Shown here: in pieces, positions 1 to 64,000 of the stretch | How positions within the stretch are numbered: the first letter of the stretch is position 1 | Layout of the letters: each line of letters begins with the position of its first letter | Notes under the pieces: generated by a model | What the model was told of the DNA's origin: nothing | What the model saw: only the letters and a program-made list of their open reading frames with translations | Database searches by the model: none | Sequence record: MT708547.1 | Reading direction: 5' to 3' (one strand) | Length of the DNA: 64,000 nucleotides | Made by a program: the position numbers and the translations under genes

Positions 1-255
1 GATGATCTAACCGTTGATGAGGAAACCCCAACTTTTGATATGGAATCTGATGCTTCCTTTGATGATATTGAAGAACCTGTACCGGAAGATCGTGCAATGA
101 AAGAATCTGTACAATATACCCAAGTTGGTATCAAAATGGAAAGTACTAAAGGTACTATTGGTACAAAATATTTCAGTACTCATAAAGAAGCTGAAAAATG
201 GCTCAAAGAAAATGAATCTAAAGTCAAAAAAGTACTTGGGTTCGAGAAAAAATAA
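1..255 (+). CDS. Hypothetical protein, 5'-truncated by window edge
   Basis: Frame is open from base 1 to TAA at 253-255; acidic sequence. Confidence 0.6.
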   Translation, partial: DDLTVDEETPTFDMESDASFDDIEEPVPEDRAMKESVQYTQVGIKMESTKGTIGTKYFSTHKEAEKWLKENESKVKKVLGFEKK

Positions 256-263
256 GGTTAATT

Positions 264-614
264 ATGAAATTTCGTGATATTGTAAAAATCACAGAAGATG
301 CACCACCAAAAGATATTCGCAATATGATCACCAGTATTGCATTATCACTAGTTGCATCTGGTAGGGAAGAGGTTGGTATTCAGTCATTGGTTAATGAAAT
401 TAAGAAAAGGACTGGTATTGATGTTCCTTATAATGTGATGATGGATATTTTAAATTCGTTGCCATTTGTTCAGGATGCAAATTCTGATAGAGTACAATTT
501 TCAGGAACTGATACCAGTACTGACTTTAAGCAACCTAATTCAGAAGAAAGTTCTGAACAAAAAGTACAAGATATGGCTGGTAAAGCAGCCACCGACAGTA
601 TGAAATCACTATAA
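264..614 (+). CDS. Hypothetical protein
   Basis: 116-aa ORF with AAGGT RBS. Confidence 0.7.
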   Translation: MKFRDIVKITEDAPPKDIRNMITSIALSLVASGREEVGIQSLVNEIKKRTGIDVPYNVMMDILNSLPFVQDANSDRVQFSGTDTSTDFKQPNSEESSEQKVQDMAGKAATDSMKSL

Positions 615-619
615 AATTT

Positions 620-649
620 TTGAACAAAAAGACAAAAATAAGCTATAAT
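620..649 (+). promoter_or_regulatory. Sigma70-like early promoter
   Basis: TTGAAC-N18-TATAAT; the same A-rich design recurs at 6448, 24108, 51041, 53333, 54204, 54373 and 54580. Confidence 0.7.
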
Positions 650-666
650 TATGGAGTAACAAGGGA

Positions 667-1374
667 ATGTTTGTTCCACCTATTATTAGCAGATATTCTT
701 ATGTTGATTATAAAAGAATTGAAGGCGGCTCTCAGGGTCGCCTTTATTCTACCCCAACCGGAAATCTGCCATCGGTAACTACAATTCTAAGTGCCACATC
801 CAATGATGAAGGATTGAAAAAATGGCGTGAATTTGTGGGAGAAGAAAAAGCCAATGCTATCACACTGGAAGCAACGACAATTGGTACCTTTATGCATGAA
901 AATTTAGAAAATAGATTAAATTCTAAGCCAGATCATGAAGGTGGTATGCCAGTACGTGTATTAGCAAGAAAAATGGCTGATAAAATTCAAGAAGAAGCGT
1001 GGCCTAAAATTAATGAAGTATGGGGTCAGGAAGTACCACTGTACTATGAAGGTCTATGGGCTGGAACAACAGATTTGGTTGGAATTCATGACGGAATTCC
1101 AACCATCATGGATTACAAAAATTCTAGAAAAAAGAAAACATGGAATCATATTGAAAATTACCGTTTACAAATTGCCGCATATGCGTTGGCTCATAACTAT
1201 ATGTATGGAACTGATATACGACGTGGTGTAATATTTGTTTGTGTAAGAGAAGATCCTCAAAATTTACAATATCAGGAATTTATAATTGAAGGTGATGATT
1301 TTGATGAAGCCGTACAAATGTGGATTTCTAGAGTAGAGCAATATTATATAATGAATGGGCAAATTATAAATTAA
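667..1374 (+). CDS. PD-(D/E)XK exonuclease (Cas4/MGME1-like)
   Basis: LPSVTTIL, GTFMHENLE, AGTTDLVG, IMDYKNS and YRLQIAAYALA motifs. Confidence 0.85.
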   Translation: MFVPPIISRYSYVDYKRIEGGSQGRLYSTPTGNLPSVTTILSATSNDEGLKKWREFVGEEKANAITLEATTIGTFMHENLENRLNSKPDHEGGMPVRVLARKMADKIQEEAWPKINEVWGQEVPLYYEGLWAGTTDLVGIHDGIPTIMDYKNSRKKKTWNHIENYRLQIAAYALAHNYMYGTDIRRGVIFVCVREDPQNLQYQEFIIEGDDFDEAVQMWISRVEQYYIMNGQIIN

Positions 1375-1394
1375 ATTAGCAAACTGGAGTAACA

Positions 1395-1931
1395 ATGAAA
1401 GACAACGTATACATTTATATTATTAAAGTACTGGAAGGTAAAGGTTACGATATCAATGAAGTAATCAAGAAAAGCGATAAAGAAATCAAATCTCTTCCTC
1501 TATCTCGTCAGATTATTGAGGGTATTATTTCTTATAAAGAAAAGGGTTCCCCAAAACTAGAAGAAATCGAAAAGGAAATCTTTGATAAGAGATATAACCC
1601 AGACGTGGAAGTAAAAACTTCAGATATTATCGAATATGTAAAAAACACCGATGAACAAAATGAAGTCCTGGATAATATTAAACAAGAACAACTTGAAGAA
1701 ATTCCTGATGATGTAATTGTAATTAAACATACTGCTCCGAACAAAGAAGATTTGGATATCATCAAAGATGCCCTTCAACAAAAAGAACTCCGTACAATTG
1801 CAAAATATGTTAAACACCTGAAAGACACCGTTCCTTCTGCTATTATGTCTGCTGTTGATAGTGTGACTATTAATGACCTAATTAATGCACGAATTGCAGA
1901 AGTAAAATCAGCAGAAGAAAAAACTAAATAA
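1395..1931 (+). CDS. Hypothetical protein
   Basis: 178-aa ORF with GGAG RBS. Confidence 0.7.
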   Translation: MKDNVYIYIIKVLEGKGYDINEVIKKSDKEIKSLPLSRQIIEGIISYKEKGSPKLEEIEKEIFDKRYNPDVEVKTSDIIEYVKNTDEQNEVLDNIKQEQLEEIPDDVIVIKHTAPNKEDLDIIKDALQQKELRTIAKYVKHLKDTVPSAIMSAVDSVTINDLINARIAEVKSAEEKTK

Positions 1932-1962
1932 TCCTATAACGAACTTTGATTAAGGGTTTAAT

Positions 1963-2538
1963 ATGGCTCAACAACAAATCGCTTTACAACAAATCAGAAC
2001 AGGTAAACAGCGTGATTTACCGGATGCGTTGGAAAAAGGACAACTAGGATTCAGTACTGACGTAGGTCGTATGTTCGTTGGTTTACCATCCTCATCTGAT
2101 CCTGCAAGTTTAGTAGCAGGTCGTAATTGGGACAATGCACCAAATAGTGGGAAAGAAAATGTAGAAATTATTACGGAGTTTACACCATGGCAGGTTGTTT
2201 CTAATATTGTAAACCGACCGTATGTATTCTCTGTACCGAAGGGTGGTAGTACGCAAATTTCAATTCAAAGTGATAATAGAGTGTTTCTTGATTATATGGC
2301 ATATAACGATACTTCCAGTATTCTGGAAAGTGGTAATGTACAAATGTTGTGTAATGATTCAAAAACACTACTGGCACAATTTAATAATACAACTCAAGAA
2401 GAGGGTATCATTTCATTGACTTTCTCGGATGCAACATTCGATGAAAGTACTAAATTGATGGTATTCACTATCACTAATAATGACACGGAAAGTGATTATA
2501 GTATAGAATTCGTATATAGAGGCTGGGATAAACCGTAA
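1963..2538 (+). CDS. Putative virion/tail-associated protein
   Basis: N-terminal QIRTGKQRDLPDALEKGQLGFSTDVGRMFVG resembles the N-terminal module of phage tail-fibre/tropism proteins. Confidence 0.5.
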   Translation: MAQQQIALQQIRTGKQRDLPDALEKGQLGFSTDVGRMFVGLPSSSDPASLVAGRNWDNAPNSGKENVEIITEFTPWQVVSNIVNRPYVFSVPKGGSTQISIQSDNRVFLDYMAYNDTSSILESGNVQMLCNDSKTLLAQFNNTTQEEGIISLTFSDATFDESTKLMVFTITNNDTESDYSIEFVYRGWDKP

Positions 2539-2605
2539 AAGGCTCCCAGCCTTTTTATCCCCTAAAATAATTAAAAACAATAAAAAAAACTTAAAAGGAT
2601 GTAAA

Positions 2606-4921
2606 ATGATTAACGTTATTAAACGTGATGGATCAAAAGAACCACTCGACCTTGATAAAATTCACCAGATTTTATTTTTTGCATGTGAAGGTATTTCTGG
2701 TGTGTCTGTGTCCGAAATTGAAATTCGTGCTAAATTGCAATTTCATGAAGGAATTAAAACTTCTGTAATTCATGATATCCTAATTAAAAGTTCATCAGAG
2801 CTTATTTCTGAAGATACTCCAAATTATCAATACGTAGCTGGTCGTCTTTTGAATTATAGTATTCGTAAAGAAGTTTATGGTCAGTATGAACCAATTCCTT
2901 ACGGAGAATATGTAAATAACATGGTTCAAAAAGGTATATACGATCCTATCATTCTGGAAAAATATAATTCAGCAGAAATCGAAGAACTCGGGAAATGCAT
3001 TAAACACAAACGTGATGATAAATTTACTTTTGTTGCAATGAGTCAATGGCAAGGTAAGTATCTGTGTAAAAACCGTGTAACTAAAGAAATTTATGAAACA
3101 CCACAAATGGCTTATATGACTATCGCTGCTACGATTTTCTCTGAATACAGTACTGAAATTCGTTTGTCATATGTTAAGAAGTTCTATGATGCTATTAGTA
3201 CTTTTGATATTAGTTTACCAACTCCGATTATGTCCGGTCTTCGCACTAATACACGTCAGTTCTCAAGTTGTGTAGTACTGAATGTTGGCGATAGTCTTGA
3301 TAGTATTGGTTCCAGTAATCATGCAATCCTGCGTTATATTTCACGTAAAGCAGGGCTTGGTGTTAATATGGGACGTATTCGTGCAATTGATTCTGCAATT
3401 CGTGATGGTGATGCAGTACATACTGGTGTAGTACCATTCTTATCCGCATTAGCAAAAACAGTTAAAAGCTGTTCACAGGGAGGTGTAAGAGGTGGTGCAG
3501 CAACCGTACATTTTCCAATGTGGCATTTGGAATTTGAAAATATTGTAGTACTGAAAAATAATAAAGGAACTGAATTTAACCGAGTAAGACAACTGGACTA
3601 TTGCTTCCAAATCAATAAGACATTATATCAACGATTGATTGATGGAAAAGACATTACATTCTTTAGCCCACATGATGTTCCTGATCTATATGATGCATTT
3701 TGTGCTGATCAAGAAGAATTTGAACGTCTGTATATTAAGTATGAACTCGATGAAACTATTCGTAGGAAAACTATGCCAGCGATTGAAGCATTTAGTCATC
3801 TAATACAAGAGCGTGCAGAAACTGGTCGCATTTATATTCAGAATATTGATAATGCCAATGAGCATGGTTCATTTATTCCAGAAATTGCACCAATTGAGCA
3901 AAGTAATTTGTGTCAGGAAATTGATTTACCATCTGTTCCATTTGAAGATATTAATAATGGTGAAGGTCTTATTAGCCTATGTACTTTGAGTGCTATTAAC
4001 TGGGGTAATTTTGACAAACCCGAAGATATGGAAGAAGCGTGTGATTTGGCTGTCCGTGCCCTGGATGCTATTCTTGATTATCAGGATTATCCAGTACTAC
4101 ATGCTGAACGAGCTACAAAGCTCTACAGACCACTTGGTGTTGGTATTATGAGCCTAGCCTATTTCCTGGCTAAACGTGGCTTAAAATACGATACAAACGC
4201 ATTGAGCACTATTAACGAATGGTCAGAAGCGTGGTCTTATTATTTGATTAAAGCATCCGTAAACCTTGCAAAAGAAAAAGGGCATTGTGATGGATTTAAG
4301 AATACTAAGTACTCACTGGGTTTATTCCCACATGACACTTATAAATCAGATTCATATATCAATGAAATTGCACCATATGAATTAAAACAAGATTGGGATT
4401 CCCTACGTGAAGAAATGATGGTGTATGGTATTCGTAATGCTACATTACATGCAAATATGCCAGGAGAAACATCATCACAAATCAGTAATAGTACTGCTGG
4501 TATTGAAAAGATTCGTTCTCTTGTAACAGTAAAAACTTCTAAAGATGGTGTTCTTAAACAAGTTGTACCTGAAATTTCAAAATTAAAGAACAAATATGAC
4601 CTACTATGGGAACAATCTGATAATATTGGTTATCTTCAGGTGTGCGGCGTTATGCAGAAATATATGGATCAAGGTATAAGTACTAATACGAGTTATAATC
4701 CTGAAAAGTTCCAAGATGGAAAAGTGCCAATGTCAGTACTGTTAACAGAACTTCTAATGGCTTATAAACTTAACACAAAACAACTATACTATCATAACGT
4801 GTTGGACAATGCTTCTGAAGTTGATATTGACAAATATATGGAAGAAAAAAATAAATTAACAAAAAATGATATTGTTTTGCTTGAGCTACCAGAAGATGAC
4901 TGTGAGAGTTGTAAATTGTAA
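2606..4921 (+). CDS. nrdA: Ribonucleoside-diphosphate reductase class Ia, alpha subunit
   Basis: ATP-cone VIKRDG, SLPTPIM, FSSC, GGVRGGAAT, QSNLCQEI, LKQLYY-like motif and C-terminal CESCKL. Confidence 0.98.
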   Translation: MINVIKRDGSKEPLDLDKIHQILFFACEGISGVSVSEIEIRAKLQFHEGIKTSVIHDILIKSSSELISEDTPNYQYVAGRLLNYSIRKEVYGQYEPIPYGEYVNNMVQKGIYDPIILEKYNSAEIEELGKCIKHKRDDKFTFVAMSQWQGKYLCKNRVTKEIYETPQMAYMTIAATIFSEYSTEIRLSYVKKFYDAISTFDISLPTPIMSGLRTNTRQFSSCVVLNVGDSLDSIGSSNHAILRYISRKAGLGVNMGRIRAIDSAIRDGDAVHTGVVPFLSALAKTVKSCSQGGVRGGAATVHFPMWHLEFENIVVLKNNKGTEFNRVRQLDYCFQINKTLYQRLIDGKDITFFSPHDVPDLYDAFCADQEEFERLYIKYELDETIRRKTMPAIEAFSHLIQERAETGRIYIQNIDNANEHGSFIPEIAPIEQSNLCQEIDLPSVPFEDINNGEGLISLCTLSAINWGNFDKPEDMEEACDLAVRALDAILDYQDYPVLHAERATKLYRPLGVGIMSLAYFLAKRGLKYDTNALSTINEWSEAWSYYLIKASVNLAKEKGHCDGFKNTKYSLGLFPHDTYKSDSYINEIAPYELKQDWDSLREEMMVYGIRNATLHANMPGETSSQISNSTAGIEKIRSLVTVKTSKDGVLKQVVPEISKLKNKYDLLWEQSDNIGYLQVCGVMQKYMDQGISTNTSYNPEKFQDGKVPMSVLLTELLMAYKLNTKQLYYHNVLDNASEVDIDKYMEEKNKLTKNDIVLLELPEDDCESCKL

Positions 4922-5072: not shown

Positions 5073-6197
5073 ATGTCAGTGTTTCAAAAAAATACAAAAT
5101 CACATTTAGAAAAGAATATGTTTTTTGATGAAGCGGTAGATATCCAACGCTTTGAAACTAACAAGTATTCTACCATTGAGAAATTAACCGAACAACAAAA
5201 AGGATTTTTCTGGAGTCCCGGTGAAGTTGATGTAAATAAAGACAAAATTGATTTTACTAAATTATCTGAAGCGGAAAAGCATATTTTCACTTCCAACCTC
5301 AAACGTCAGATACTACTTGATTCAGTACAGGGTCGTGGTCCAAACACGGTACTTCTACCACTGGCTTCGTTACCGGAAGTAGAAAATTTTATTGAAACTT
5401 GGGCGTTCTTTGAAGGTGCAATTCATAGTAAATCATATACTCATATTATTCGTAACATCTACACCAATCCATCTGAAGTATTTGATACTATGCTTGATAT
5501 TCCTGAAATTCTGGATTGTGCCGTTGACGTATCTAAGTACTATGATGATTTAGAAGAATACGGTACTTGGTATCGTATGCTTGGTGTTGGCACACATACT
5601 ATCAATGGTAAAGAACTTGTTATTGACATGTATGAACTGAAAAAGAAACTGTGGTTGTGCTTAAATTCCATTAACGTATTGGAGGGTATACGATTTTATG
5701 TCTCATTCGCTGCATCCTTTGCATTTGGTGAAAATAAAATCATGGAAGGTAATGCCAAGATCATTAGACTAATTGCGAGGGATGAGTCTCTCCATTTAGC
5801 AGCAACTCAAATGATGCTTCGTTTGTTGAAAAAAGAAGATCCAGACTTTGTTAAAATTTCTGAAGAATGCTATGATGAAGTCCAGAGTATGTTCTTGGAT
5901 GCTATTAAGCAAGAAGAAGACTGGGCTGATTATCTATTTAAAGATGGTTCTATTATCGGTCTTAATGCTGAAATACTAAAACAGTATGTTCGCTGGATTG
6001 GATCTAAACGTATGGCAGCAGTTGGAATTAAGTGTCCATATGCTGTAACGAAAAATAGCCCACTCCCATGGATGGAACATTGGATTAGTAGTGCGGGTGT
6101 GCAGGTTGCACCACAAGAAACTGAAATTAGTTCCTATGTAATTGGTGGTATAAAAGCCGATATTACAGAAAACACGTTCAGTACATTTAAACTATAA
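5073..6197 (+). CDS. nrdB: Ribonucleoside-diphosphate reductase class Ia, beta subunit
   Basis: FFWSPGEV, QILLDSVQGR, IHSKSYTHI, EGIRFYVSF, RDESLH, VAPQETEISSY. Confidence 0.98.
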   Translation: MSVFQKNTKSHLEKNMFFDEAVDIQRFETNKYSTIEKLTEQQKGFFWSPGEVDVNKDKIDFTKLSEAEKHIFTSNLKRQILLDSVQGRGPNTVLLPLASLPEVENFIETWAFFEGAIHSKSYTHIIRNIYTNPSEVFDTMLDIPEILDCAVDVSKYYDDLEEYGTWYRMLGVGTHTINGKELVIDMYELKKKLWLCLNSINVLEGIRFYVSFAASFAFGENKIMEGNAKIIRLIARDESLHLAATQMMLRLLKKEDPDFVKISEECYDEVQSMFLDAIKQEEDWADYLFKDGSIIGLNAEILKQYVRWIGSKRMAAVGIKCPYAVTKNSPLPWMEHWISSAGVQVAPQETEISSYVIGGIKADITENTFSTFKL

Positions 6198-6204
6198 AAT
6201 ACAA

Positions 6205-6236
6205 AATTCAGTACTGATTAAGTACTGAATTTTTTT
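6205..6236 (+). terminator. Terminator hairpin after nrdB
   Basis: AATTCAGTACT-GATTA-AGTACTGAATT followed by a T-run. Confidence 0.65.
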
Positions 6237-6250
6237 ATAAGGTATAAATT

Positions 6251-9368: not shown

Positions 9369-9725
9369 ATGATAATTTTATACTTTCTATGGATTAATAT
9401 ATTATTAGTACTGATAACTTCAGGATTTAGTACTACTGCAATTGTTGTTTATATTTTAAGTTCAGTGTTTATGATTATGAGATCATTATCTATAATTTTC
9501 AGTACTGAATTAGCAAAAAAGAATAATGATTTTTATGTCTTTTTATCGGAACTTAAAGATGATAATCCAAAATTAACTAAAAGTAACATCGTGTGTTCCA
9601 ATTTAATACATTTGATACTAATATTTGTATTTTTGCATAGTTATATTGCATTGGGCTTTGTATTATTTAATGTTATTATTAGACTTATCGAATCATATAA
9701 AATGGAGAAATTATTTAATGGCTAA
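9369..9725 (+). CDS. Hypothetical membrane protein
   Basis: Several hydrophobic segments. Confidence 0.6.
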   Translation: MIILYFLWINILLVLITSGFSTTAIVVYILSSVFMIMRSLSIIFSTELAKKNNDFYVFLSELKDDNPKLTKSNIVCSNLIHLILIFVFLHSYIALGFVLFNVIIRLIESYKMEKLFNG

Positions 9726-10242
9726 AATTATTTTATGTACAGATAAAAATTACGGTATAGGATATAAAAATACAATTCCGTGGCATAGCAGTGAAGATTT
9801 TAAACACTTCAAAGAAGAAACTTTGAATAAAACTGTTGTGATGGGATATAATACATGGAAATCCCTACCAAATAAACCACTTTCAAAAAGACTTAATATT
9901 GTGCTTGTTAATCGTGCATATGAAGATCGTGATATGTATGATCAAACCAACGTCTTATTTCTGGATGAAGATAATTTAGAAAGTATTATTCGTAATAACC
10001 CTGATTGTGTTATTATTGGCGGTGCATCAATTTATAAAATGAGTTTGCCTCATGTAGATGAAATCGTACATAGTATAATTCCCAAAGAATTTGTATGTGA
10101 TTGCTTTTTTGACTTCACTATTGATAAGCGTGTGATTATTGAACGTGAAAGTTGTAAAACACTTGATGATGGTATTATGGTGGATTATTATAAATGCAAA
10201 CCAAATCCAGATTATGATGATTACGTGGATTCATATCAATGA
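9718..10242 (+). CDS. frd: Dihydrofolate reductase
   Basis: GIGYKNTIPWHSSEDFKHFK, VVMGYNTWKSLP, RLNIVL, IIGGASIY; start reassigned to ATG 9718. Confidence 0.95.
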   Translation: MAKIILCTDKNYGIGYKNTIPWHSSEDFKHFKEETLNKTVVMGYNTWKSLPNKPLSKRLNIVLVNRAYEDRDMYDQTNVLFLDEDNLESIIRNNPDCVIIGGASIYKMSLPHVDEIVHSIIPKEFVCDCFFDFTIDKRVIIERESCKTLDDGIMVDYYKCKPNPDYDDYVDSYQ

Positions 10243-10823
10243 AGATAAAGGATATGGAAGTTCATTTATGTGAGCGTGGTGAAATTTCTTCATTCATTGA
10301 AGAACATCATTATTCTAAAAATATTAATGGTTGTATAACTGATTATTGTTTCAAATTAACATATAATAATGAAATAATTGGTGCTATGTTTTATGGAAAA
10401 ATGGCTATGGCTAACCAATACAAAAGATTTGTTGATAGAGAAGAAGATTGTATTGAGTTGCGTAGATTATGCTGTATTGATGATACACCAAAAAACACTG
10501 AAAGTTTTTTTATTGGTAAAACACTAAAATGGCTTAAAAAGAACACGCAAATAAAGGTGGTTGTTAGTTATGCAGATCAAGAATATGGTCATAGTGGTAT
10601 AATTTATAAAGCATCTAATTTTGAATATAATGGATTTAAAAAAGGTGCTAAAGTTATAATCCACAATGGCAAACAATATCATGATAAAGCTATTAGAACT
10701 AAGTATAAAGGGAAGTTAAAACCATTTGCACAAAGATTAAAAGATGCATTAGACAGTGGTGATGCTTATTATAAACAAACTGCTGGAAAACATACTTACA
10801 CTTACAAGTTAAGGAAAACTTAG
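10239..10823 (+). CDS. Mom-like (GNAT-fold) putative DNA modification protein
   Basis: EEHHYSK, IELRRLC, TESFFIG, SYADQEYGHSGIIYKASNF. Confidence 0.7.
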   Translation: MKIKDMEVHLCERGEISSFIEEHHYSKNINGCITDYCFKLTYNNEIIGAMFYGKMAMANQYKRFVDREEDCIELRRLCCIDDTPKNTESFFIGKTLKWLKKNTQIKVVVSYADQEYGHSGIIYKASNFEYNGFKKGAKVIIHNGKQYHDKAIRTKYKGKLKPFAQRLKDALDSGDAYYKQTAGKHTYTYKLRKT

Positions 10824-10846: not shown

Positions 10847-12205
10847 ATGTCAATAAAAAAAGAAACTACAAAATTAAAACCCACCGCAGATCAGAAAGTT
10901 ATACTTGATGATTTTTTGGATAGAGTTGATAATTATCCAGGTAGGACTGAAGCTGTTCTTTCTGCACCTGCTGGTACTGGTAAAACGTTCACCACTGCTG
11001 AAATTATTAAATTACTTTATAAAGATTATAATATTGCGGTAACTTCTCCTACACACAAAGCAAATTCCGTAATTCAAAATATGCTTATCAACCAAGCAGG
11101 GATTACAAAAGAAGATGCAAAGGTAAGTACTATTCATTCTTTTCTTGGGCTTAAATTGGTACAGGAAAAAAATCATCAAGTACTGAAGCACGATCCACAT
11201 AGTAAATTATCAACAACCAACGTTGATGTTCTTATCGTGGACGAATGTTCTATGATTTCAGAAGAATTATATTTCCATATACAGAATCAATTACATCGTG
11301 TACGAAGGGCAGTGTTATACATTGGCGATAAATGTCAGTTACCACCAGTAGAAGCTGAAGTTATTGGTAAAGAAAAATTATCCCCAACCTTTGATGTTTC
11401 AGTACAGTATACATTAACTGAAGTACTACGTCAGGCAATGGACAATCCAGTACTATCAGTCGCTACTGCTATCAGAGAATGCATCGGTACCAATAAAGAT
11501 CCAATGCATATTATGGTCAATAACACAAAAGGCCATGATACTATCACACCCATTGATGATGAAGATTTATTTCTGAATGTATATAAGGATTTTATTATTG
11601 AAAACAAAGGTAATAGTAATAAAATTTTTGATTTCGTGAATGAAAATAAAATCCTTGCATATACGAATATGAGAGTTAATATTGCAAACATGTATATCAG
11701 AAATCAATTATATGATGTACTTGATGAATTTGTAAAAGGGGAACCTATTGTATTTGAGAGTATTACCGAAAATAGTCCATATTCTGTTCAACAAATTATT
11801 CAGTGTCCAAGAGTGAGAAAAGAATCATTTATGGGTATTGATTGTTGGCAGTTTCAGTTACTTAATGGTAGTTTCATTTACGGTGTTGGTCCTTCATCAC
11901 GTGCGGCAATGGAAGATCATTTACAGGATATGGTAAGAAAGATTGAAAAGAAAGTTTTTAATCCATTGACAAAACGACCATATGTATGGCAGGATTATTA
12001 TATCATTCGCAATAAAATGCATATCATTAATTACCCATACGCAACAACTGTCCACAAATCACAGGGTAGTACATTCGATAATATTTGGTTTGATACTGAT
12101 TTCATTGAGAGAATCCCAAACAATGATATGAAATGTCGAATTCTTTATACTGCAATGACACGTCCCAGATATAGTGTAATGTTAAGACAGAATGATTACT
12201 ATTAA
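10847..12205 (+). CDS. dda: SF1B DNA helicase (Dda/RecD-like)
   Basis: APAGTGKT, SPTHKA, IVDECSMI, IGDKCQLPPV, EVLRQ, TVHKSQGSTF, YTAMTR. Confidence 0.92.
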   Translation: MSIKKETTKLKPTADQKVILDDFLDRVDNYPGRTEAVLSAPAGTGKTFTTAEIIKLLYKDYNIAVTSPTHKANSVIQNMLINQAGITKEDAKVSTIHSFLGLKLVQEKNHQVLKHDPHSKLSTTNVDVLIVDECSMISEELYFHIQNQLHRVRRAVLYIGDKCQLPPVEAEVIGKEKLSPTFDVSVQYTLTEVLRQAMDNPVLSVATAIRECIGTNKDPMHIMVNNTKGHDTITPIDDEDLFLNVYKDFIIENKGNSNKIFDFVNENKILAYTNMRVNIANMYIRNQLYDVLDEFVKGEPIVFESITENSPYSVQQIIQCPRVRKESFMGIDCWQFQLLNGSFIYGVGPSSRAAMEDHLQDMVRKIEKKVFNPLTKRPYVWQDYYIIRNKMHIINYPYATTVHKSQGSTFDNIWFDTDFIERIPNNDMKCRILYTAMTRPRYSVMLRQNDYY

Positions 12206-13083: not shown

Positions 13084-13593
13084 ATGAAAGAAATTATTGC
13101 CAATGACAAAATTATTGCTAAAACTGTTCGTTTAGTAATGGACGGTTCTAGTGAAGTAATGGCAATTGCTAAAGCACGTCAGGAAGCCGATAATTTGGGT
13201 CTTGATATTGTGGTTGTAAATAATGGGGATGTGCCTGTAGTTAAAATTGTAGACCTTAACAAATACAAATACGAACTCAAACAATCAGAAAAAGCATCTC
13301 TGAAAAAACAGCGTCAGAATGTTATCAGTACTAAGGAGATTCAATTCACTTTCGGTACTCAGGATAATGATTTGATCGTTAAGGCTAAATCTGCTACTAA
13401 GTTTTTATCAGAAGGTAAAAATGTATTAATTGTTATGAAAACCGTTGGTCGTGGAAATACACCTCAATTAGTTAAACAAAATATTGATGCGATGAATGCT
13501 TTTGTGAAACGTCTTGGTGAAGTAGACTTTATCCAAAAAGTCGAATATCAGGGCAAAAAAGTAACATGCACTGTCAAAAGTACTGTAAAATAA
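13084..13593 (+). CDS. infC: Translation initiation factor IF-3 homolog
   Basis: ANDKI..VRLV, GLDIVVV, PVVKIVDLNKYKYE, KEIQF, DNDLIVKAK..KFLSEG.NV, GRG; two-domain IF-3 layout. Confidence 0.9.
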   Translation: MKEIIANDKIIAKTVRLVMDGSSEVMAIAKARQEADNLGLDIVVVNNGDVPVVKIVDLNKYKYELKQSEKASLKKQRQNVISTKEIQFTFGTQDNDLIVKAKSATKFLSEGKNVLIVMKTVGRGNTPQLVKQNIDAMNAFVKRLGEVDFIQKVEYQGKKVTCTVKSTVK

Positions 13594-15800: not shown

Positions 15801-17768
15801 ATGGCTAAGAAACAAGAAAGTTCAGTACTTCAAGAACATGATGTACAACGCCTTAATGATTATCAACATGCTCGTCTACGCAGTGAAATGTACTTAGGAT
15901 CAAGAAGTATCCATGAAAGCCAAGTTCTCATTTTTGGGGAAAATTCATACCAAGTTACTAACATGGAATGGGTGCCTGCATTACTTACTGCATGTCGTGA
16001 ATTATGGGATAATTCACTTGATGAGTTTAAAAAAGCCGGTACTAAAGAACCGGTACTTAAAATTGAATTTGATGAAAATGAATTAACATTCAGTTGTATT
16101 GATAATGGACGCGGTATTCCAATTGATTATGTTCCAGATTTCAATACTAATCTCTGTACTATGGTAATGACTGAAACAAAGACTGGTAGAAACTTTGATG
16201 ATTCAAAGCGTGATGAAACTATTGGTCAAAATGGTCTGGGTGGATCCGTGGCAATGCTTGTAAGTTCTAAAGCTGAAATGGAAATACATCGAAAAGGTCG
16301 TCCATATAAAACATCAGCGTCCAATGATTCATATGATGGATTTTATAAATTCAGTCAAAATTTTAAAGAAGGTACTGAATTTATTCCAGAAATTCAAATT
16401 TCTGAACCAGTAATTAGAAAAATTAGTTCTGATAAAACAGGAACAAGTATTAGACTAACATTTAGTCCTTCTGTATTTCCTAACAGAAAATTACCAATTG
16501 AACTGTTGTACAGCATTTTAAAAGAAATGGCATCAGCAAATCCAACATATAAAATCTTTTTGAATAATAAACGAATTAATGTTAAACCAACTCCAGAAAA
16601 AACATTATTTAATGCATCTAAACTAATGCAACTAAATGTTAACGATGAATCTTTTAACTTTAACAGTACTTTTTATATTATTCCAAATGCTGTTAATAAT
16701 ATGAATACTAATTTTCATATGCATGGTTTAGTTAATAATGCACCAGCGTTCGATGGTGGTACTCATCTAGATACATTCAAGAAACATTTTTCACTTGGTA
16801 TTGCTAATGCTCTTGAAAAAGAAGCGAAGAAGCGTAAGATGAAGCCAAACCGTTCAGATATTGAAGAAGGGCTTCTGATTTATAATGTAACTACAATGAA
16901 AGCACCTTCATTCAATTCACAAATTAAATCCAAATTAACTAACGAAAATGTAGTTAAACCAATTCAACAAGCAATGAGTACTGAATGGTTCGAAGAATTA
17001 GTTAAAAAGAATAAAGATTGGGTTGATGAAATATTTGAACGTTGTGCTGCACGTACAAATAAAAAAGATGCAGAAGAAGATCGTCGTCTTGCTAAAAAAC
17101 TTCTTAAAGGTAAAGTTGCCAAACTACTTGATTCAGTTGGTACTGATCGTTCCAAATGTATTCTAATGTTGGCAGAAGGTGATTCTGCTATTTCTAACAT
17201 GGCTAGTGCTCGTGATCCTAATATTCATGGTATCTTACCTTTACGTGGTAAAATTATGAATGTGAGTGGTGAAGAGAAAACAAAAGAATTAATGGATTCT
17301 GATGCATTGCATGATATCATGGCTAGTATTAACCTAGTTCCAGGTGTGAAGGCAAATCGTGATGAATTGAGTTTTGGTAAATTATACATAGCAACGGATG
17401 AAGATACTGACGGCCTTAATATAGCCGCATTGATTTGTAATTTTCTTTATAAATTCTGGCCTGAACTATTTCAGGATGCCGATAATCCGTTTGTGTATGT
17501 ATTCAAAACTCCATTTATTATTCTGGAGAAAGGGAAAGAATCAAAATACTTCTATGGTTATAATGTTTCTGAATACAATCCTGAAGATTGGAAGGGTTGG
17601 AACGCCACACGTGCAAAAGGATTGGGAACATTGGAAAAGAGTAATTTCAGAGACGCATTCACCAATAGTGTAGCGGTTGCAATTACCGATGATGGTAATT
17701 TAGGTGAAACACTGGATTTGATATTCAATAAAAAGAGAGCAGATGATCGTAAAGCATGGATGGCTTAG
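15801..17768 (+). CDS. Type II DNA topoisomerase, ATPase/TOPRIM subunit (T4 gp39+60 / GyrB-like)
   Basis: RLRSEMYLGS, ELWDNSLDE, DNGRGIP, GQNGLGG, LAEGDSA, PLRGKIMN, TDEDTDG, KGLGT. Confidence 0.95.
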   Translation: MAKKQESSVLQEHDVQRLNDYQHARLRSEMYLGSRSIHESQVLIFGENSYQVTNMEWVPALLTACRELWDNSLDEFKKAGTKEPVLKIEFDENELTFSCIDNGRGIPIDYVPDFNTNLCTMVMTETKTGRNFDDSKRDETIGQNGLGGSVAMLVSSKAEMEIHRKGRPYKTSASNDSYDGFYKFSQNFKEGTEFIPEIQISEPVIRKISSDKTGTSIRLTFSPSVFPNRKLPIELLYSILKEMASANPTYKIFLNNKRINVKPTPEKTLFNASKLMQLNVNDESFNFNSTFYIIPNAVNNMNTNFHMHGLVNNAPAFDGGTHLDTFKKHFSLGIANALEKEAKKRKMKPNRSDIEEGLLIYNVTTMKAPSFNSQIKSKLTNENVVKPIQQAMSTEWFEELVKKNKDWVDEIFERCAARTNKKDAEEDRRLAKKLLKGKVAKLLDSVGTDRSKCILMLAEGDSAISNMASARDPNIHGILPLRGKIMNVSGEEKTKELMDSDALHDIMASINLVPGVKANRDELSFGKLYIATDEDTDGLNIAALICNFLYKFWPELFQDADNPFVYVFKTPFIILEKGKESKYFYGYNVSEYNPEDWKGWNATRAKGLGTLEKSNFRDAFTNSVAVAITDDGNLGETLDLIFNKKRADDRKAWMA

Positions 17769-17771: not shown

Positions 17772-19481
17772 ATGAAACATGATGAAGTAGTTAGTATAAT
17801 TAAAAAATTTGCCAATGAAGTCAAGTCCAATGGGGAATCAGTACTAAAGCAAATTAAAAAGATGGATAGATATGAAGAAGTTATTTCATATCTAAAAAGC
17901 TATTATGGTGACTATGATATTAAAGTTCTAATTGGTTCAGTACTGAATGATTTAGATACCATTCCCATTGCTGCTTGTGGGAATGTATGTAGATTTGATG
18001 GATTAAAATTGAGGTACGTATGTACCTCATATAAAATGAACAAAGAAGAAACATGTCCTGAGTGTCATATTAAATTAAAAGAAATAATGAACAACAACAG
18101 AATGCAATCTGTGGAAATGAAGTACGGTACTCCATATATATCTAAAGTTCCAGAATTTAGAGAGAAAGCAAAAAATACAATGTTTAATGAGTATGGTGTA
18201 TATAATATTTCTAATTTGGATTCTGTGAAAAAGAAAAAAAGTGATAATTATCACAATAAAAGTTTAGAAGAAAAAGAACGTATTAAAGAAAAAAATAAGA
18301 AAAAAGTAATACAGACATATGGTGTTGATAACGTATCTAAATCTGAAATTGTAAAACAAAAGAAACTTGGTAATAAAAATCCATTCAATAATAGTACTTT
18401 TAAAATTAAAAATATCATTAATACAACCAAACGAAGATATAATAGCATAACAGACTATTTAAAAACCAATGATAAACCATATACACTAACTTACATGCCA
18501 TTTGCATATAAAGATGACCATGTATTTCAATGTAAGTGTGGTGAAATTATAAGTTGTAAAATACAATCGTTTGATACAATACGTTGTTATAAATGTTTCC
18601 CATTGGAAGTAAGTTCTGGTGAACTTTGGTTGAGACAAGAAATTGAAAATATTATAAGTAATACATCAACAAGTACTGAAATGTTATTAAATCAAAGGTA
18701 TGATTTTATTGATAACAGAGAAATTGATATATACTTACCTGAATTGAAAATAGGTTTTGAATTCAATGGTTCGTACTGGCATAATGATGAACACAAAGAT
18801 AAGTACTATCATCAGAAGAAATCGATTTCTGCAAAAAACAATGGTATCAATTTAATACATATCCATGAATCTGATTATAATAAAATAAAAGATAAAATTG
18901 TAATGAGATTAAAACATGTATTAAACAAAAATGATAAAACAATTTATGCAAGAAAATGTATTGTAAAAGAAGTATCATTTAAAGAAAGTGAAGTATTTTT
19001 GGATGAATATCATTTTCAACAATCATGTGTATCAGGTATAAGAATTGGATTATATTATGATAATGAATTAGTAGCATTGGCTACGTATGGAAAATCCAGA
19101 TATGACAAAAAATATGAATATGAATTATTGAGATTCTGTACCAAGTATTCGGTACCGGGTGGGTTTAGTAAAATAATGAAATACTTTGAGCAAACATACA
19201 ACCCTAAATCATTGATGACATATGCCGATCTGGACTGGAGTAATGGTAATGTTTATGAAAAAAATGGGTTTGAGTTTGTGAAATACACCGAACCAAGTTA
19301 CTTTTATGTGGATAAATATCAAAATAAAATTTCAAGATATGATTGTCGTAAAACGGAATTATTAAAACTGTATGATTGGGCTACCAATGATATGACGGAA
19401 ACTGAAATCTGTAAAAAATTAAATTACAATAAAATATATTCATCTGGAAATATCGTTTATCGTAAAATATATAACAAATAA
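17772..19481 (+). mobile_element. Free-standing Hef/DUF559-like endonuclease with a C-terminal Mom-like domain
   Basis: YGVYNIS/YGVDNVS repeats, Cys clusters, SSGE..EIDIYLPELKIGFEFNGSYWH, and C-terminal ELLRFC..TYADLDWSNGNVY. Confidence 0.75.
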
Positions 19482-54138: not shown

Positions 54139-54203
54139 TCACAGAACGGTTCAGCATTTGGTAGTATGTTTGACTGAATAAAGCATAAACGTTTAAAAAA
54201 GTG

Positions 54204-54231
54204 TTGAACAAAAAGTTCAGTACTGTATAAT
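54204..54231 (+). promoter_or_regulatory. Promoter for tRNA-Arg
   Basis: TTGAAC-N16-TATAAT with TGAAC-N5-GTTCA. Confidence 0.65.
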
Positions 54232-54242
54232 TGACTTACTAC

Positions 54243-54316: not shown

Positions 54317-54372
54317 TACCATACAATATGGGAATAGTTAGAAGATATTCCCAATTTTAATTTAAAAAAGTG

Positions 54373-54401
54373 TTGAACAAAAAGTTCAATAATGATATAA
54401 T
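54373..54401 (+). promoter_or_regulatory. Promoter for tRNA-Ser(GCT)
   Basis: TTGAAC-N17-TATAAT with TGAAC-N5-GTTCA. Confidence 0.7.
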
Positions 54402-54558: not shown

Positions 54559-54577
54559 TAAAATTCAATTAAAAAAT

Positions 54578-54708
<131 letters not shown>

Positions 54709-54766: not shown

Positions 54767-54825
54767 AAATTTTAATTTAAATAGTACTTGACAAAAATAT
54801 TCAGTACTGATACATAAAGAATATT

Positions 54826-61043: not shown

Positions 61044-61628
61044 ATGTTAAGTACTTTTAAGCGAGTTTATTTAAGAAACAACAAAATGCAAGTTCGTTTA
61101 CACAAAGACGAAGCTGATTCGTTTATGGCTAAAGCTATTGTTAAATCTGAATTGTACAAACGCCTTTCACCAAAAGAAAGCTCGCCATATGGATTTAATC
61201 ACCCACACAGCCATTATGTTGGATTGGTGTGTGAACACGCTGCTTATGTGTTGTTCACGGAACTGGAAGAAATGACTGGCATCAAATACTATATCGATCC
61301 AGCATTCCAGAATAGTAAAAGAGATGGTGAATGTGATTTAATTGTTAACAATCTACGTATAGAAGTGAAGGGTATTAAGTACAAATCATGGACTAATTAT
61401 GGTCCGTGTATCAGTACAAGACAATTGAAGAATATTGAGAAAAAGGCAGATATCATTCTGTGGGTTTTGTATAATGAAAAACGTCATGAATTTTCGTTTG
61501 AAGGTTTTAATTATGTAAAAGATGTACATACTGTACCAGTTAAAATTACTGGTGCTAAAGGTAAACCACAAATTAAAAATCATCCAGTTATTGATATTAT
61601 TAAACCATTACAGGAATTACCAATATGA
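61044..61628 (+). CDS. Putative PD-(D/E)XK restriction-endonuclease-like protein
   Basis: GLVCEHAA..DGECDLIVNNLRIEVKG. Confidence 0.6.
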   Translation: MLSTFKRVYLRNNKMQVRLHKDEADSFMAKAIVKSELYKRLSPKESSPYGFNHPHSHYVGLVCEHAAYVLFTELEEMTGIKYYIDPAFQNSKRDGECDLIVNNLRIEVKGIKYKSWTNYGPCISTRQLKNIEKKADIILWVLYNEKRHEFSFEGFNYVKDVHTVPVKITGAKGKPQIKNHPVIDIIKPLQELPI

Positions 61629-61882
61629 TCAAATGTAATATCGTAGTGTATAATTATGAGATTAATTCACGCGATGGAAGTGAAGAATTAGTGAATTCAT
61701 ATTTAGAATATGTAGTTAATTTTCCAGTACTACCGGCGATTGGTTCTGAATTGAAAATTTATACATACAATGAAAAAGTATATGTAGTACTGGATATTGA
61801 ATACAGAACACGAATTATGGATTGTCATAATATTGACAATCCAAGTACTATGGAAATTAATATCATTGTTAAGGAAGTATAA
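61625..61882 (+). CDS. Hypothetical protein
   Basis: 85 aa; LPAIG motif similar to the next ORF. Confidence 0.6.
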   Translation: MIKCNIVVYNYEINSRDGSEELVNSYLEYVVNFPVLPAIGSELKIYTYNEKVYVVLDIEYRTRIMDCHNIDNPSTMEINIIVKEV

Positions 61883-62124
61883 TGAACCAACAATACATGA
61901 TTAAAGTGGTTTTGTACAAAAATGATAATCAGAGAACTAAAATCTGTTCTTCTTATGTTCAGTCATTGCCAAGAACCGGGGAACTTATTACAGTACTTAA
62001 TGATAAATTCATTGTTGAACAGATTGAACACACACTGTATCCAATTAGTACAACTGATACAGTTTCATGGAATATGAATCAACATTCTGAATCTGGTATT
62101 GCTATTATTTGTACAAAAACATAA
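61882..62124 (+). CDS. Hypothetical protein
   Basis: 80 aa; LPRTGE motif. Confidence 0.6.
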   Translation: MNQQYMIKVVLYKNDNQRTKICSSYVQSLPRTGELITVLNDKFIVEQIEHTLYPISTTDTVSWNMNQHSESGIAIICTKT

Positions 62125-62584
62125 GGTGCCACAATATATGATGTATTTTATATTTCTGTACTTAATATGTCACCTTGTTATTGTTACTATTATGGACAGA
62201 CATTCACACTTTGGATATAGTTATAAAGTTGCTAAGATTTATGGTTTTAAATCATATTTTGTTGCACTATTTTATAGTTATATACTCGATCCAAAGTATA
62301 TGGTATTGTCTCTTATACTACAAAAAGAAGCAAATATTGATACTATTTCTAAAATAGAATTCGTGTGTAGACGATTTCTTAATTCAGATGATAAATGCTC
62401 CATTGATTTTCATTCGGATAAAATCATTTTTGTGTATAAAGGTGTATTCACTTGTGGTATTGAATTAAATCAGGTATTAGGTGTAGTTGATATTTCATGG
62501 AATCATAATGTCATTATGCATCCAAGAACTATCAAGCTAATAGAAGCATGTAAAATAAAAGTTGACAGCGACACAAAGAGATGA
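62099..62584 (+). CDS. Hypothetical membrane protein
   Basis: Hydrophobic N-terminus; start uncertain. Confidence 0.5.
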   Translation: MLLFVQKHKVPQYMMYFIFLYLICHLVIVTIMDRHSHFGYSYKVAKIYGFKSYFVALFYSYILDPKYMVLSLILQKEANIDTISKIEFVCRRFLNSDDKCSIDFHSDKIIFVYKGVFTCGIELNQVLGVVDISWNHNVIMHPRTIKLIEACKIKVDSDTKR

Positions 62585-62612
62585 TATTATATAGAATAAA
62601 CATATTAAAGAG

Positions 62613-63086
62613 GTGTATATGGATTCTTTAGCTACTCTATTCAAACTGAATACTTCAGAAAAAGAAGGTTATTTGAGTATCAGTGATCTTGAAAATACAA
62701 GTGAATATATTTTCAAAAATACAATCAAAATTAAAGCGAATAAGGATAAAAGCAATACACATTTCACAAAATGGATTGCTTATTGGGAGGGTGTTAATTT
62801 CGCAGTTGAAATGACAGTTCTACCAAAAGTATTAAGTACCGGATTTGTTAAAGTTGTTATTATTGATAAAAATCTTCGACCAATTTCTGAAATTGGTGAA
62901 TACCCGGTTAAGGGTACTAAAGTTTTTGGTACCATGATCAATAATAAGTTCATGATCGAAAAAACAAAAACTCAATACATCAATCAGGTTATTTCTGAAT
63001 TCGAGAACAAACCTAAACCAAAAACTAAATCAGAAACCAATGAAGAATATGTTAATAAAATTAAAGAAGCATGGGGATTGAAATAA
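62613..63086 (+). CDS. Hypothetical protein
   Basis: 157 aa with GAGGT RBS. Confidence 0.65.
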   Translation: MYMDSLATLFKLNTSEKEGYLSISDLENTSEYIFKNTIKIKANKDKSNTHFTKWIAYWEGVNFAVEMTVLPKVLSTGFVKVVIIDKNLRPISEIGEYPVKGTKVFGTMINNKFMIEKTKTQYINQVISEFENKPKPKTKSETNEEYVNKIKEAWGLK

Positions 63087-63535
63087 TGTTAACTTTAAAA
63101 AATCTAAAGTACTTAATTATGATTAGTATTATCCTATTCATCTCCAATGTACCTATGGATATTTTTAAATTTGGTGACACACGATTGGGTGCATTCATTG
63201 GTGTATACAGTTTAATATTCTGCATCATAACATTTGTGGTTGCGTTTGTTATGTTCATTGAAGATATGTATGATGATAAAGACTTTTATTTCGAATTTCT
63301 CGGAAAAGATAGTTATTCATTTATCTGGACATTCTCTATTTTACCAGCATTAATTTATGCATTCTTTATCGCAGAGGGTGGTATCGCCTATGGAGTTATG
63401 GGTATCTTCTTATTTCTTTTCTGGGAAAGAATCAGAACTATTCAAAACCGATATGCTCAAGAATATCGTGATGAAGAACTAAAAAATGAAGCAATGCGTA
63501 AGAATTATCCACCAGAAGAGGTAGAAATTAAATGA
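63071..63535 (+). CDS. Four-TM membrane protein (paralog 1)
   Basis: Hydrophobic; layout similar to the next ORF. Confidence 0.6.
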   Translation: MGIEIMLTLKNLKYLIMISIILFISNVPMDIFKFGDTRLGAFIGVYSLIFCIITFVVAFVMFIEDMYDDKDFYFEFLGKDSYSFIWTFSILPALIYAFFIAEGGIAYGVMGIFLFLFWERIRTIQNRYAQEYRDEELKNEAMRKNYPPEEVEIK

Positions 63536-63960
63536 GTACTTATTTGAAAATAACACTATTTGCTTTTATTGTATTTCTTATTCAGTTATATGGTATTCTT
63601 GTACATAACTACAATTTACCTTCATTTCTGAATGAATCTTGGTATATTGGTTCTTTTTGGGTTACTGGAGCATTGGGTGTACTTGGGGTAATTCTGTCAA
63701 TTGCAATAATCATTATTACAGCCGACGATGCAGACAAAGAAACTACTATTAAAATGTTCGGATTTGATGAACTTAGTCCGTGGATTTATAGTAGACCATT
63801 CCTTTTATTGGCTATCGTATTTGTACAACTAGGTTCTCTATGGGTTGCTGCTTTCTGTTTTAGTGTGTGGTCTTACCAAACTCTTCAGATTAGTGAACAC
63901 CGTGACTATTTGATTGAAAAGCTAACAAAAGAGGCAGAAAAAGGCACCAAAAATCATTAA
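63532..63960 (+). CDS. Four-TM membrane protein (paralog 2)
   Basis: Hydrophobic; ATGA overlap. Confidence 0.6.
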   Translation: MSTYLKITLFAFIVFLIQLYGILVHNYNLPSFLNESWYIGSFWVTGALGVLGVILSIAIIIITADDADKETTIKMFGFDELSPWIYSRPFLLLAIVFVQLGSLWVAAFCFSVWSYQTLQISEHRDYLIEKLTKEAEKGTKNH

Positions 63961-64000
63961 TCATTGACAAATGTTCTTCACATGAGGTAATATCATTACC

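Follow-up and report, generated by a model that had tools for sequence, protein, structure and literature searches.

AGTACT, a palindrome held at high density in RaK2-like jumbo phages, is a likely DNA-level recognition word

The palindrome AGTACT is dispersed at many times its expected frequency through a 64,000-nt stretch of the genome of Klebsiella phage Muenster (positions 248,001-312,000 of MT708547.1; hereafter the window). Muenster, a member of the genus Alcyoneusvirus, is a RaK2-like jumbo myovirus with a genome of 346,937 bp. An earlier reading of the bare letters (the original prediction) had claimed that this word is strongly over-represented, and our results confirm the claim. The excess is not a by-product of codon usage, lower-order composition, or biased mutation, and it has been kept independently in lineages with near-saturated synonymous sites, where individual sites come and go. 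Since AGTACT is kept at the cost of protein changes amid purged palindromes, some machinery must read it. We consider it likely, with a probability of roughly 0.8, that AGTACT is a DNA-level recognition word held at high density by selection in RaK2-like jumbo phages of enterobacteria. Whole-genome counts were made on the complete genome of K64-1, a 99% relative of Muenster, and OR844650.1 was used as the reference genome for Asteriusvirus.

Over-representation of AGTACT in the window

The window contains 150 copies of AGTACT, against 13.1 +- 3.9 (maximum 24) in dinucleotide-preserving shuffles, which represents an excess of about 11-fold. The form CAGTACTG was found 34 times where about 0.5 copies are expected, and TTCAGTACTGAA was found 23 times with at most one mismatch (0.34 expected), as 8 perfect copies, located at 9498, 17936, 26002, 32605, 42139, 50450, and 60326 among others, and 15 copies with one mismatch. 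The original prediction had put about 25 copies in the first 10 kb, with a similar density throughout; we counted exactly 25, and the copies are spread over the whole window at 4-16 per 4 kb. Using maximum-order Markov models, the most over-represented tetramer was GTAC (z 11.8), the pentamers were led by AGTAC and GTACT (z 9-10), and the hexamers were led by CAGTAC.

It could be argued that codon usage, amino-acid content, or lower-order k-mers produce the excess indirectly, given that the maximum-order Markov model predicts 134 of the 150 sites. This prediction is no refutation, because the model is built from the enriched 5-mers of AGTACT itself; orders 0-3 predict 13-62 copies. When protein sequences and per-gene codon usage were held constant, 38.9 +- 5.6 in-gene copies were expected and 128 were observed (3.3-fold), and codon permutation yielded 20.5 +- 4.1. 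AGTACT was the top hexamer under both shuffling nulls. As originally described, the word occurs in every reading frame, and each of the three phases is enriched under the synonymous shuffle (66, 13, and 49 copies against 22.5, 2.3, and 14.1 expected). It is also denser between genes (3.5 per kb, n = 21) than in coding DNA (2.2 per kb). The same control applied to the whole genome of K64-1 gave 709 in-gene copies against 220.6 +- 13.1 (3.2-fold, z 37). The enrichment thus does not vanish after correction for codon and lower-order k-mer bias: synonymous shuffles predict only 39 of 128 copies in the window and 221 of 709 in K64-1, and a compositional origin is refuted.

Anatomy and spacing of the word

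The sites share the consensus ttCAGTACTGaa, an AGTACT core with symmetric and graded flanks. The base 5' of the core is C in 43-49% of sites and the base 3' is G in about 48%, with T-rich positions farther out on the 5' side and A-rich positions on the 3' side. In K64-1 we found 33 perfect 12-mers (0.1 expected from order 1 and 0.8 from order 3) and 111 12-mers with one mismatch (1.2 and 13.2 expected, respectively). The mismatch fell in the flanks in 97 of these 111 copies and hit the central GTAC in only five: the core is strict and the flanks are soft. Flank preferences also differ between lineages. The 5' flanking C is found in 46-58% of sites in three lineages and is replaced by A (40-44%) in the GAP32-like and Yersinia-phage lineages, and G is the least used base beside the core in all five (5-8%).

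AGTACT spacing is Poisson-like within the window. In K64-1, outside the hot region described below, it is slightly more even than random (coefficient of variation of 0.935 against 0.998 +- 0.038), and gaps shorter than 40 bp number 44 where 66 +- 8 are expected. Our tests on the window and on K64-1 detected no clustering and no periodic spacing.

Whole genomes and phylogenetic range

The excess extends to whole genomes and to relatives of Muenster. AGTACT was found 940 times in K64-1 (79 expected, about 12-fold), with 242 copies of CAGTACTG (3 expected, about 80-fold) and 2,514 copies of GTAC (903 expected). The Asteriusvirus genome presented 918 copies (101 expected) with the same flanks. Excesses were likewise detected in RaK2 (46 copies, 4.3 expected), a GAP32-like 358-kb contig (68, 6.0 expected), Yersinia phage fHe-Yen9-04 of the genus Eneladusvirus (49, 4.4 expected), and the unclassified Logan contig L088, which represents a new lineage with 79% identity (44 copies within 14.7 kb, 3.1 expected). 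The word is present at 2-3 sites per kb in four genera of enterobacterial jumbo phages and one unclassified contig. The related 349-kb Vibrio phage 2.275.O presented no excess (8 copies, 6.0 expected) and does not avoid GCGC. In Klebsiella phage KP13-7, an insert of approximately 4.1 kb with several open reading frames (ORFs) splits nrdA (L086:275-4368); it carries four copies of AGTACT (1.0 per kb), below the genome average.

Phage genomes are usually described as palindrome-avoiding, and these genomes do so to an extreme degree. GCGC is entirely absent from the ~347 kb of K64-1, where about 200 copies are expected, and it is also absent from Asteriusvirus and from the GAP32-like, Yersinia-phage, and L088 loci. 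In total, 17 palindromic hexamers have zero copies in K64-1 and 23 in Asteriusvirus. The purged sets partly differ: CTTAAG is found 0 times in K64-1 and 52 times in Asteriusvirus, and GGTACC 43 and 0 times, respectively. The only strongly enriched palindrome in both genomes is AGTACT. This enrichment amid purged palindromes is not the pattern of a Type II restriction-modification target of the ScaI/RsaI type, and Pfam scans of the window and of K64-1 found no cognate endonuclease/methyltransferase pair for the word.

Several non-palindromic words are also scarce. In the window and in the K64-1 and Asteriusvirus genomes, the most depleted hexamers are TAAATA and TATTTA (e.g., 170 against 499 expected in K64-1), and AAAAAA and TAAG are depleted as well; this scarcity may reflect avoidance of spurious T4-type late promoters (TATAAATA). 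GATGTC and GACATC are found once and not at all in K64-1 (~76 expected for GATGTC), and 28 and 12 times in Asteriusvirus, which looks like avoidance of a Klebsiella-specific asymmetric restriction site.

Turnover of sites and mutation input

We compared 48 orthologues between the window and Asteriusvirus (61% nucleotide identity). AGTACT density is equal in the two sets, and 14 of the 53 alignable sites are shared (26%, against a hexamer baseline of 10%). At 79% nucleotide identity, in the L088 lineage, 20 of 32 sites are shared (62%, baseline 33%). Identity at four-fold codons of conserved residues between Alcyoneusvirus and Asteriusvirus is 0.468, close to the saturation expectation of 0.413. 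Among 15 conserved Ser-Thr pairs, AGTACT encodes 9 in one genus and 10 in the other, where codon usage predicts 12%. Near-saturated synonymous sites combined with persistent AGT-ACT pairing indicate that the pressure is active in both lineages, and we rejected pure decay from a richer ancestor on the same grounds.

Gains and losses were inferred from five strains that differ by about 1%, in an alignment of 44,221 columns of which 1,161 are polymorphic, with expected losses derived from the substitution spectrum and expected gains from 364 one-off neighbours of the word. Singleton changes comprised 12 losses (10.9 expected) and 3 gains (2.5 expected), and all events together comprised 16 losses (15.6 expected) and 6 gains (3.6 expected). 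The six gains were G>A, A>T, A>T, C>T, G>T, and C>A, all at outer positions. Since gains occur at the background rate and losses exceed gains, mutation is not biased toward making AGTACT. A mutational equilibrium would need gains to equal losses, and our own Poisson estimate of observing at most 3 gains given 12 is about 0.002. These dynamics fit weak selection per site on overall density, with losses still segregating among close strains.

Effect on protein sequences

The word has bent the protein sequences that carry it. Ser-Thr dipeptides number 137 in the window, against 75 expected from amino-acid frequencies and only 71 Thr-Ser. Of these 137, 66 are spelled AGTACT, against 20 predicted from codon usage. 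There are 146 Val-Leu dipeptides (98 expected), against 75 Leu-Val, and 49 of the Val-Leu pairs are encoded by A-GTA-CTn. The surplus of both dipeptides is approximately the number of in-frame copies, which implies that many copies were made by amino-acid changes. In alignments with Asteriusvirus, 15 of the 66 Ser-Thr pairs are conserved, and motif positions often align with other residues. The enrichment of AGTACT against such extreme purging of palindromes points to a positive function, with enough force to have altered hundreds of proteins.

Terminal repeat, promoters, and terminator

Most of the genome carries 2-3 copies of AGTACT per kb, but a single block of 20-30 kb reaches 5-7 per kb in both K64-1 and Asteriusvirus. 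In Muenster this hot block corresponds to the terminal repeat predicted by PhageTerm (record positions 1-20,030). A 22-kb terminal repeat with early genes has been described in the related phage CBB (PMC5259590). Scans for tRNAs and Rfam families had no match in the hot region, and we rejected structured RNA or tRNA as its explanation.

In K64-1 the hot block holds dozens of sigma70-type promoters of a single design, in which one AGTACT shares its T with the -35 box TTGACA and CAGTACTG abuts the -10 box, where its TG is usable as an extended -10. The centres of this pair, near -37.5 and -16.5, are separated by 21 bp, and K64-1 holds 19 instances of the double arrangement. The -10-proximal copy recurs in early promoters of Asteriusvirus, often with the -35 copy as well. 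The tRNA promoters of the window follow the same design, and the sites previously reported in promoter spacers were verified at 54219, 54595, and 54803 (Table 1). The promoter at 54360-54400 in the tRNA region has TTCAATAATGA where its siblings have TTCAGTACTGA and constitutes a natural variant without the word. A promoter-like context was found for only ~145 of the 940 sites in K64-1; 660 are plain intragenic sites with the symmetric consensus. The site noted earlier in a terminator also stands: the annotated terminator after nrdB holds two copies. Two nearby copies can pair into a terminator stem because the word is self-complementary.

Extended perfect palindromes centred on AGTACT (e.g., GGGAATCAGTACTGATTCCC) are found shortly downstream of terminal-repeat promoters (L093:4792-4831, 13098-13137, 15978-16017, and 11024-11108 in K64-1). 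As RNA, they would form hairpins with a GUAC loop.

When 20 ORFs of the terminal repeat were screened against Pfam for a reader that binds DNA, only an H-NS-like protein and a weak kinase-like match emerged. The former, an early gene product, combines an H-NS N-terminal oligomerisation domain (PF22470, E 6e-6) with a divergent C-terminal region; its annotation is DNA-binding, and HHpred matches it to NP_417155.1. Its gene lies at 5709-6209 in the Muenster record and at 230,004-230,501 in K64-1 (L093:6782-7279). This H-NS/StpA-like protein is kept in Alcyoneusvirus and Asteriusvirus, and these are the only two word-carrying genera with tblastn matches.

An oriented AGTACA domain beside the repeat

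Just inside the repeat of Asteriusvirus, an 8.3-kb domain (56,330-64,616) contains no AGTACT and no TGTACT, 45 copies of AGTACA, and a single GTACT. We examined it on a piece of OR844650.1 (L101:35093-44643) and on the matching piece of strain TH47 (L105). AGTACA is 8-fold above its genome rate in this domain, occurs in all three frames, and is often found within CAGTACAG or in tandem CAGTA units. The domain comprises about 16 small genes on the + strand, mostly unrelated to each other and without known function; PHROG matches of their products were all to families of unknown function. Paralogy was rejected as the cause, given that only 3 of the 16 ORFs are related and that the sites are in all frames. 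The domain is found in all Asteriusviruses. In TH47 (87% identity) it presents 0 AGTACT, 42 AGTACA, and 1 TGTACT; 29 of 43 sites are shared between the two strains and about a dozen are private to each, and outside the domain AGTACT returns abruptly to 5 per kb. These results indicate that the same kind of selection can act on the one-strand form AGTACA, with the palindrome excluded from that domain.

The adjoining 5 kb have the opposite polarity, with 9 TGTACT against 1 AGTACA and gene strand unchanged. More broadly, half-words present a top-strand excess over 40-60 kb to the right of the repeat in both genera (+24, +17, +17, and +14 per 10 kb in Asteriusvirus and +8 to +14 in K64-1). Elsewhere, a mild sense-strand preference for AGTACA is close to the codon-usage prediction. 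Between the two oriented domains of Asteriusvirus lies a tandem array of small paralogous ORFs of ~70-85 amino acids (L101:44500-46300, - strand shown).

Gene content and candidate enzymes

Nearly all genes of the window are on the + strand. They include nrdAB, dihydrofolate reductase, a helicase, topoisomerase II, the clamp loader, a tRNA cluster, and many small ORFs of unknown function. Three of the encoded proteins were considered as potential partners of the word and are listed in Table 1 with the regulatory features.

Table 1. Features of the window discussed in the text (positions are those of the window)
Feature	Position	Strand	Description
AGTACT, dispersed copies	1..64000		150 copies, 2.3/kb; 34 as CAGTACTG, 8 perfect TTCAGTACTGAA
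Terminator after nrdB	6207..6238	+	Stem formed by two AGTACT copies (6210, 6221)
Mom-like DNA modification enzyme	10239..10823	+	PF25680
Hef-like homing endonuclease	17772..19481	+	Vsr-like fold noted by annotators; between the genes for the large and medium subunits of topoisomerase II
C5-cytosine DNA methyltransferase, 295 aa	41449..42336	+	PF00145, E 1e-30
Sigma70-type promoter, tRNA region	54190..54232	+	TTGAAC, 16-nt spacer ending TTCAGTACTG, TATAAT
Second tRNA-region promoter	54566..54612	+	CAGTACTG abuts the -10 box; its TG forms an extended -10
Two-copy promoter	54780..54822	+	AGTACT fused to the TTGACA -35 box (54783); CAGTACTG before the -10 box (54803)

The C5-cytosine methyltransferase corresponds to gp194 of RaK2 by gene order. 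Its nearest solved structures are the catalytic domains of mammalian DNMT3A/3B (E 3e-22, full length), which match far better than M.HaeIII or M.HhaI. The RaK2 paper reports methylated CpG from bisulfite data that are not shown, as well as resistance of RaK2 DNA to many restriction enzymes (PMC3622015). We collected 80 IMG/VR loci around homologues of this enzyme, scored their palindromes, and built a tree. The AGTACT excess was absent from about 65 of the 80 contigs, those long enough to score. Comparing methyltransferase clade with enriched palindrome, we found the word only in the RaK2-like clade and no convincing general link. We judged this enzyme an unlikely reader or writer of AGTACT. 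K64-1 encodes a second methyltransferase, which belongs to the small phage Dam family (PF05869), and overall a link of the word to the known methyltransferases appears unlikely.

The two other candidates were rejected as parts of the system. The Hef-like nuclease has three paralogues in K64-1 and no homologue in Asteriusvirus, where the topoisomerase genes are adjacent; it therefore behaves as a mobile insertion, and the genus that lacks it is equally enriched in the word. The Mom-like gene has no homologue in Asteriusvirus either.

What might read the word

We propose that the functional unit is an oriented word, approximately (TT)CAGTAC, that would be read on one strand. The palindrome CAGTACTG would then consist of two such words overlapped on opposite strands. 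Such a two-way word would be the cheapest signal for a machine arriving from either side, and its construction would explain the symmetric flanks without invoking a dimer. In the terminal repeat, found at either end of the virion DNA, the two orientations would be required together and most densely (threefold), and the unique region beside one end would need a single orientation, as in the AGTACA domain. Our favoured guess at the reader is an enzyme of replication or recombination that tracks along DNA, starting at ends or forks. Candidates are a T4-type primase-helicase or a Chi-like control of an end-processing exonuclease; these phages encode both a T4-type primase-helicase and gp46/47-like nucleases. 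The geometry matches that of words read by tracking enzymes, such as lagging-strand primase sites and Chi-like signals. Taken as a whole, the explanation combining a selected word, an oriented unit, and a tracking reader is our preferred one, at somewhat below even odds. The mechanism of an oriented word and a tracking enzyme is slightly more tentative. The narrower proposition of a private Chi-like or primase-type polar signal CAGTAC, with about 900 copies per genome that are mostly two-way and one-way beside a fixed end, is possible but doubtful.

Several observations weigh against this explanation. The reader of AGTACT is named as a candidate only. A palindrome with symmetric flanks and a fixed placement at -35 and -10 in two genera is just what the operator of a dimeric repressor looks like, and the tracking model must treat this placement as opportunistic packing into free positions. 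The model also does not say why the reverse orientation is excluded from the oriented domain and not merely unneeded there. Outside the repeat-adjacent domain, half-words are unskewed (545 against 504, and 460 against 400). Moreover, the block of opposite polarity rests on only ~10 sites, and the gain and loss counts are small (15-22 events), with polarity set by majority rule among five recombining strains.

Alternative explanations

The original prediction offered two options: that a phage protein binds AGTACT, or that the word is generated by a ratchet of methylation and repair. Of these, the former is supported in its general form by selection on density, by dyad symmetry at the DNA level, and by conservation of the word in four genera and the Logan contig despite turnover of its sites. 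In the main rival to a tracking reader, AGTACT would be the site of a homodimeric, sequence-specific DNA-binding protein, encoded by the phage or delivered with the virion. The copy pairs of promoters would be operators through which early genes are shut off or activated. Within genes, the hundreds of copies would nucleate or coat phage DNA and so mark or organise it, and the H-NS/StpA-like early protein of the terminal repeat would be a candidate. The core and flanks are perfectly dyad-symmetric, and the site overlaps the -35 box, spacer, and -10 box of sigma70 promoters as a dimeric-repressor operator would. The graded consensus of 12-14 bp, with flank preferences that drift between genera, is as expected of a co-evolving protein. 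Paired copies 21 bp apart recur in dozens of early promoters of K64-1, and the -10-proximal copy is kept in Asteriusvirus and in the tRNA promoters of the window. A protein with an H-NS domain is indeed encoded in the repeat and kept in two genera. However, a dimer does not account for a selected domain with 45 AGTACA and neither TGTACT nor AGTACT, and most sites lack a promoter-like context. In addition, H-NS-type domains read minor-groove shape and not 6-bp palindromes, and tblastn placed the H-NS-like protein in only two of the word-carrying genera. A dimeric protein explains the promoters best and the AGTACA domain worst, and we regard it, with each of its parts, as a possibility of the same doubtful order as the private polar signal. 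Less probable, and third among the readings, is that AGTACT is a site of DNA modification, such as N6-adenine methylation, and a phage-private mark like that of Dam at GATC. Its high and even density would have been selected for strand discrimination or self-recognition, and the early-promoter copies would sense the methylation of parental versus newly replicated DNA. Marks based on hemimethylation need a palindrome, and one site per ~370 bp is of the same order as the density of GATC in E. coli. The spacing slightly more even than random, the reported resistance of RaK2 DNA to restriction enzymes, the presence of several methyltransferases (PF00145, and PF05869 in K64-1), and the further ones listed for phages Sharanji and CBB all point in this direction. 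Against it, one of the enzymes is DNMT3-like, with CpG indicated by the RaK2 bisulfite data, and the other belongs to the phage Dam family, which typically modifies GATC. Graded flanks of 12-14 bp are also unusual for a methyltransferase site, and no MutH-like partner is known. A modification mark thus appears unlikely.

The two remaining alternatives are both highly improbable. In the ratchet, the second of the original options, a C5-cytosine methyltransferase and very-short-patch repair would create AGTACT by biased correction of T:G mismatches. Both a methyltransferase and a Vsr-fold nuclease are encoded in the window, and AGTATT and AATACT fall slightly short of the counts expected from synonymous shuffles (ratios of 0.89 and 0.78), but other one-off neighbours of AGTACT are depleted to a similar degree. 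The singleton gains were at the background level and outnumbered by losses, and none of the six gains was a T>C or A>G change at the methylatable C:G position. The Vsr-like gene is a mobile insert that is missing from Asteriusvirus, which nevertheless has 918 sites. The DNMT3-like affinity of the methyltransferase, the CpG methylation reported from RaK2 bisulfite data, and the ~65 contigs with homologous enzymes and no such word argue in the same direction, and the ratchet is largely refuted. Alternatively, the copies could be sites of the host nucleoid-occlusion factor SlmA. The central hexamer of its consensus, GTGAGTACTCAC, is identical to AGTACT (PMC3020112), and the word is limited to phages of enterobacteria. 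SlmA, however, requires position 1 of its half-site to be G and position 3 to be a purine (PMC3020112), where the phage half-site TTCAGT has T and C. The base G next to the core is the least used in all five lineages, and GAGTACTC is found once in the window. With its flank requirements unmet, we rejected host SlmA as the reader.

Comparison with known systems

Full-text literature searches found no report of the AGTACT word in these phages, and keyword look-ups in the RaK2, CBB, and Sharanji genome papers and in a jumbo-phage review found nothing on it. What is new here is an enriched palindrome in a virulent phage that otherwise purges palindromes, together with a domain of a one-strand variant and a peak in the terminal repeat. 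Should the reader be found, it would reveal the means of DNA organisation, replication, or self-recognition in a 347-kb virus that lacks hydroxymethylcytosine. If the word is a polar signal, it would represent sequence-based self-marking in a virus without hypermodified bases, and a phage machine would recognise and process phage DNA from either direction. AGTACT is also a compact signature of this phage group in metagenomes, and it is relevant when these candidates for therapy are recoded or engineered.

Chi (GCTGGTGG), the FtsK-orienting polar sequences (KOPS), and the DNA uptake sequences (DUS and USS) resemble AGTACT as dispersed words under weak selection on density with positional turnover, and their readers are machines that track along DNA. 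Both the AGTACA domain and the skew of half-words beside the genome end recall the polarity of Chi and KOPS. In contrast, these words are non-palindromic and skewed genome-wide, whereas AGTACT copies are mostly palindromic and unskewed, and no reader of the RecBCD, FtsK, or uptake type is known for AGTACT. The GATC sites of Dam, read by MutH and SeqA, are likewise palindromes found every few hundred bp and in promoters can couple expression to the state of replication, but GATC is a 4-mer at about chance frequency and AGTACT is a 6-8-mer at 12-80 times chance. The SlmA-binding sites (SBS), Noc-binding sites (NBS), and matS sites of MatP are dyad-symmetric sites of 12-14 bp scattered over the chromosome that bind dimeric proteins, and SBS shares the AGTACT core. 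These sites number tens per chromosome, against ~900 copies of AGTACT in 347 kb, where the flanks required by SlmA are not found. Finally, Dcm and Vsr acting on CCWGG in E. coli are a proposed route to an over-represented methylation palindrome with a depleted deamination product; the mutation spectrum, gene distribution, and methyltransferase type found here do not fit that route, and the effect on AGTACT is far larger.

A close likeness in pattern is offered by HIP1 (GCGATCGC), the highly iterated palindrome of cyanobacteria to which AGTACT had been compared from the outset. Both are short palindromes that are over-represented many-fold genome-wide, in all frames and between genes; both affect protein sequences; and in both it is the density, not the position, that is conserved between relatives. 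For AGTACT the excess is 11-12 fold relative to an order-1 model and 3.2 fold relative to synonymous shuffles; the copies of the window occupy every reading frame and 21 intergenic sites. The analogy holds as a description and not as a shared mechanism: HIP1 overlaps the sites of resident methyltransferases (CGATCG and GATC), whereas the methyltransferases identified here point to other sites. Unlike HIP1, AGTACT is found in a virulent phage, has a one-strand AGTACA domain, and peaks in a terminal repeat. Identification of the AGTACT reader would turn these phages into a tractable experimental system in which to ask what sustains highly iterated palindromes such as HIP1, a long-standing question.

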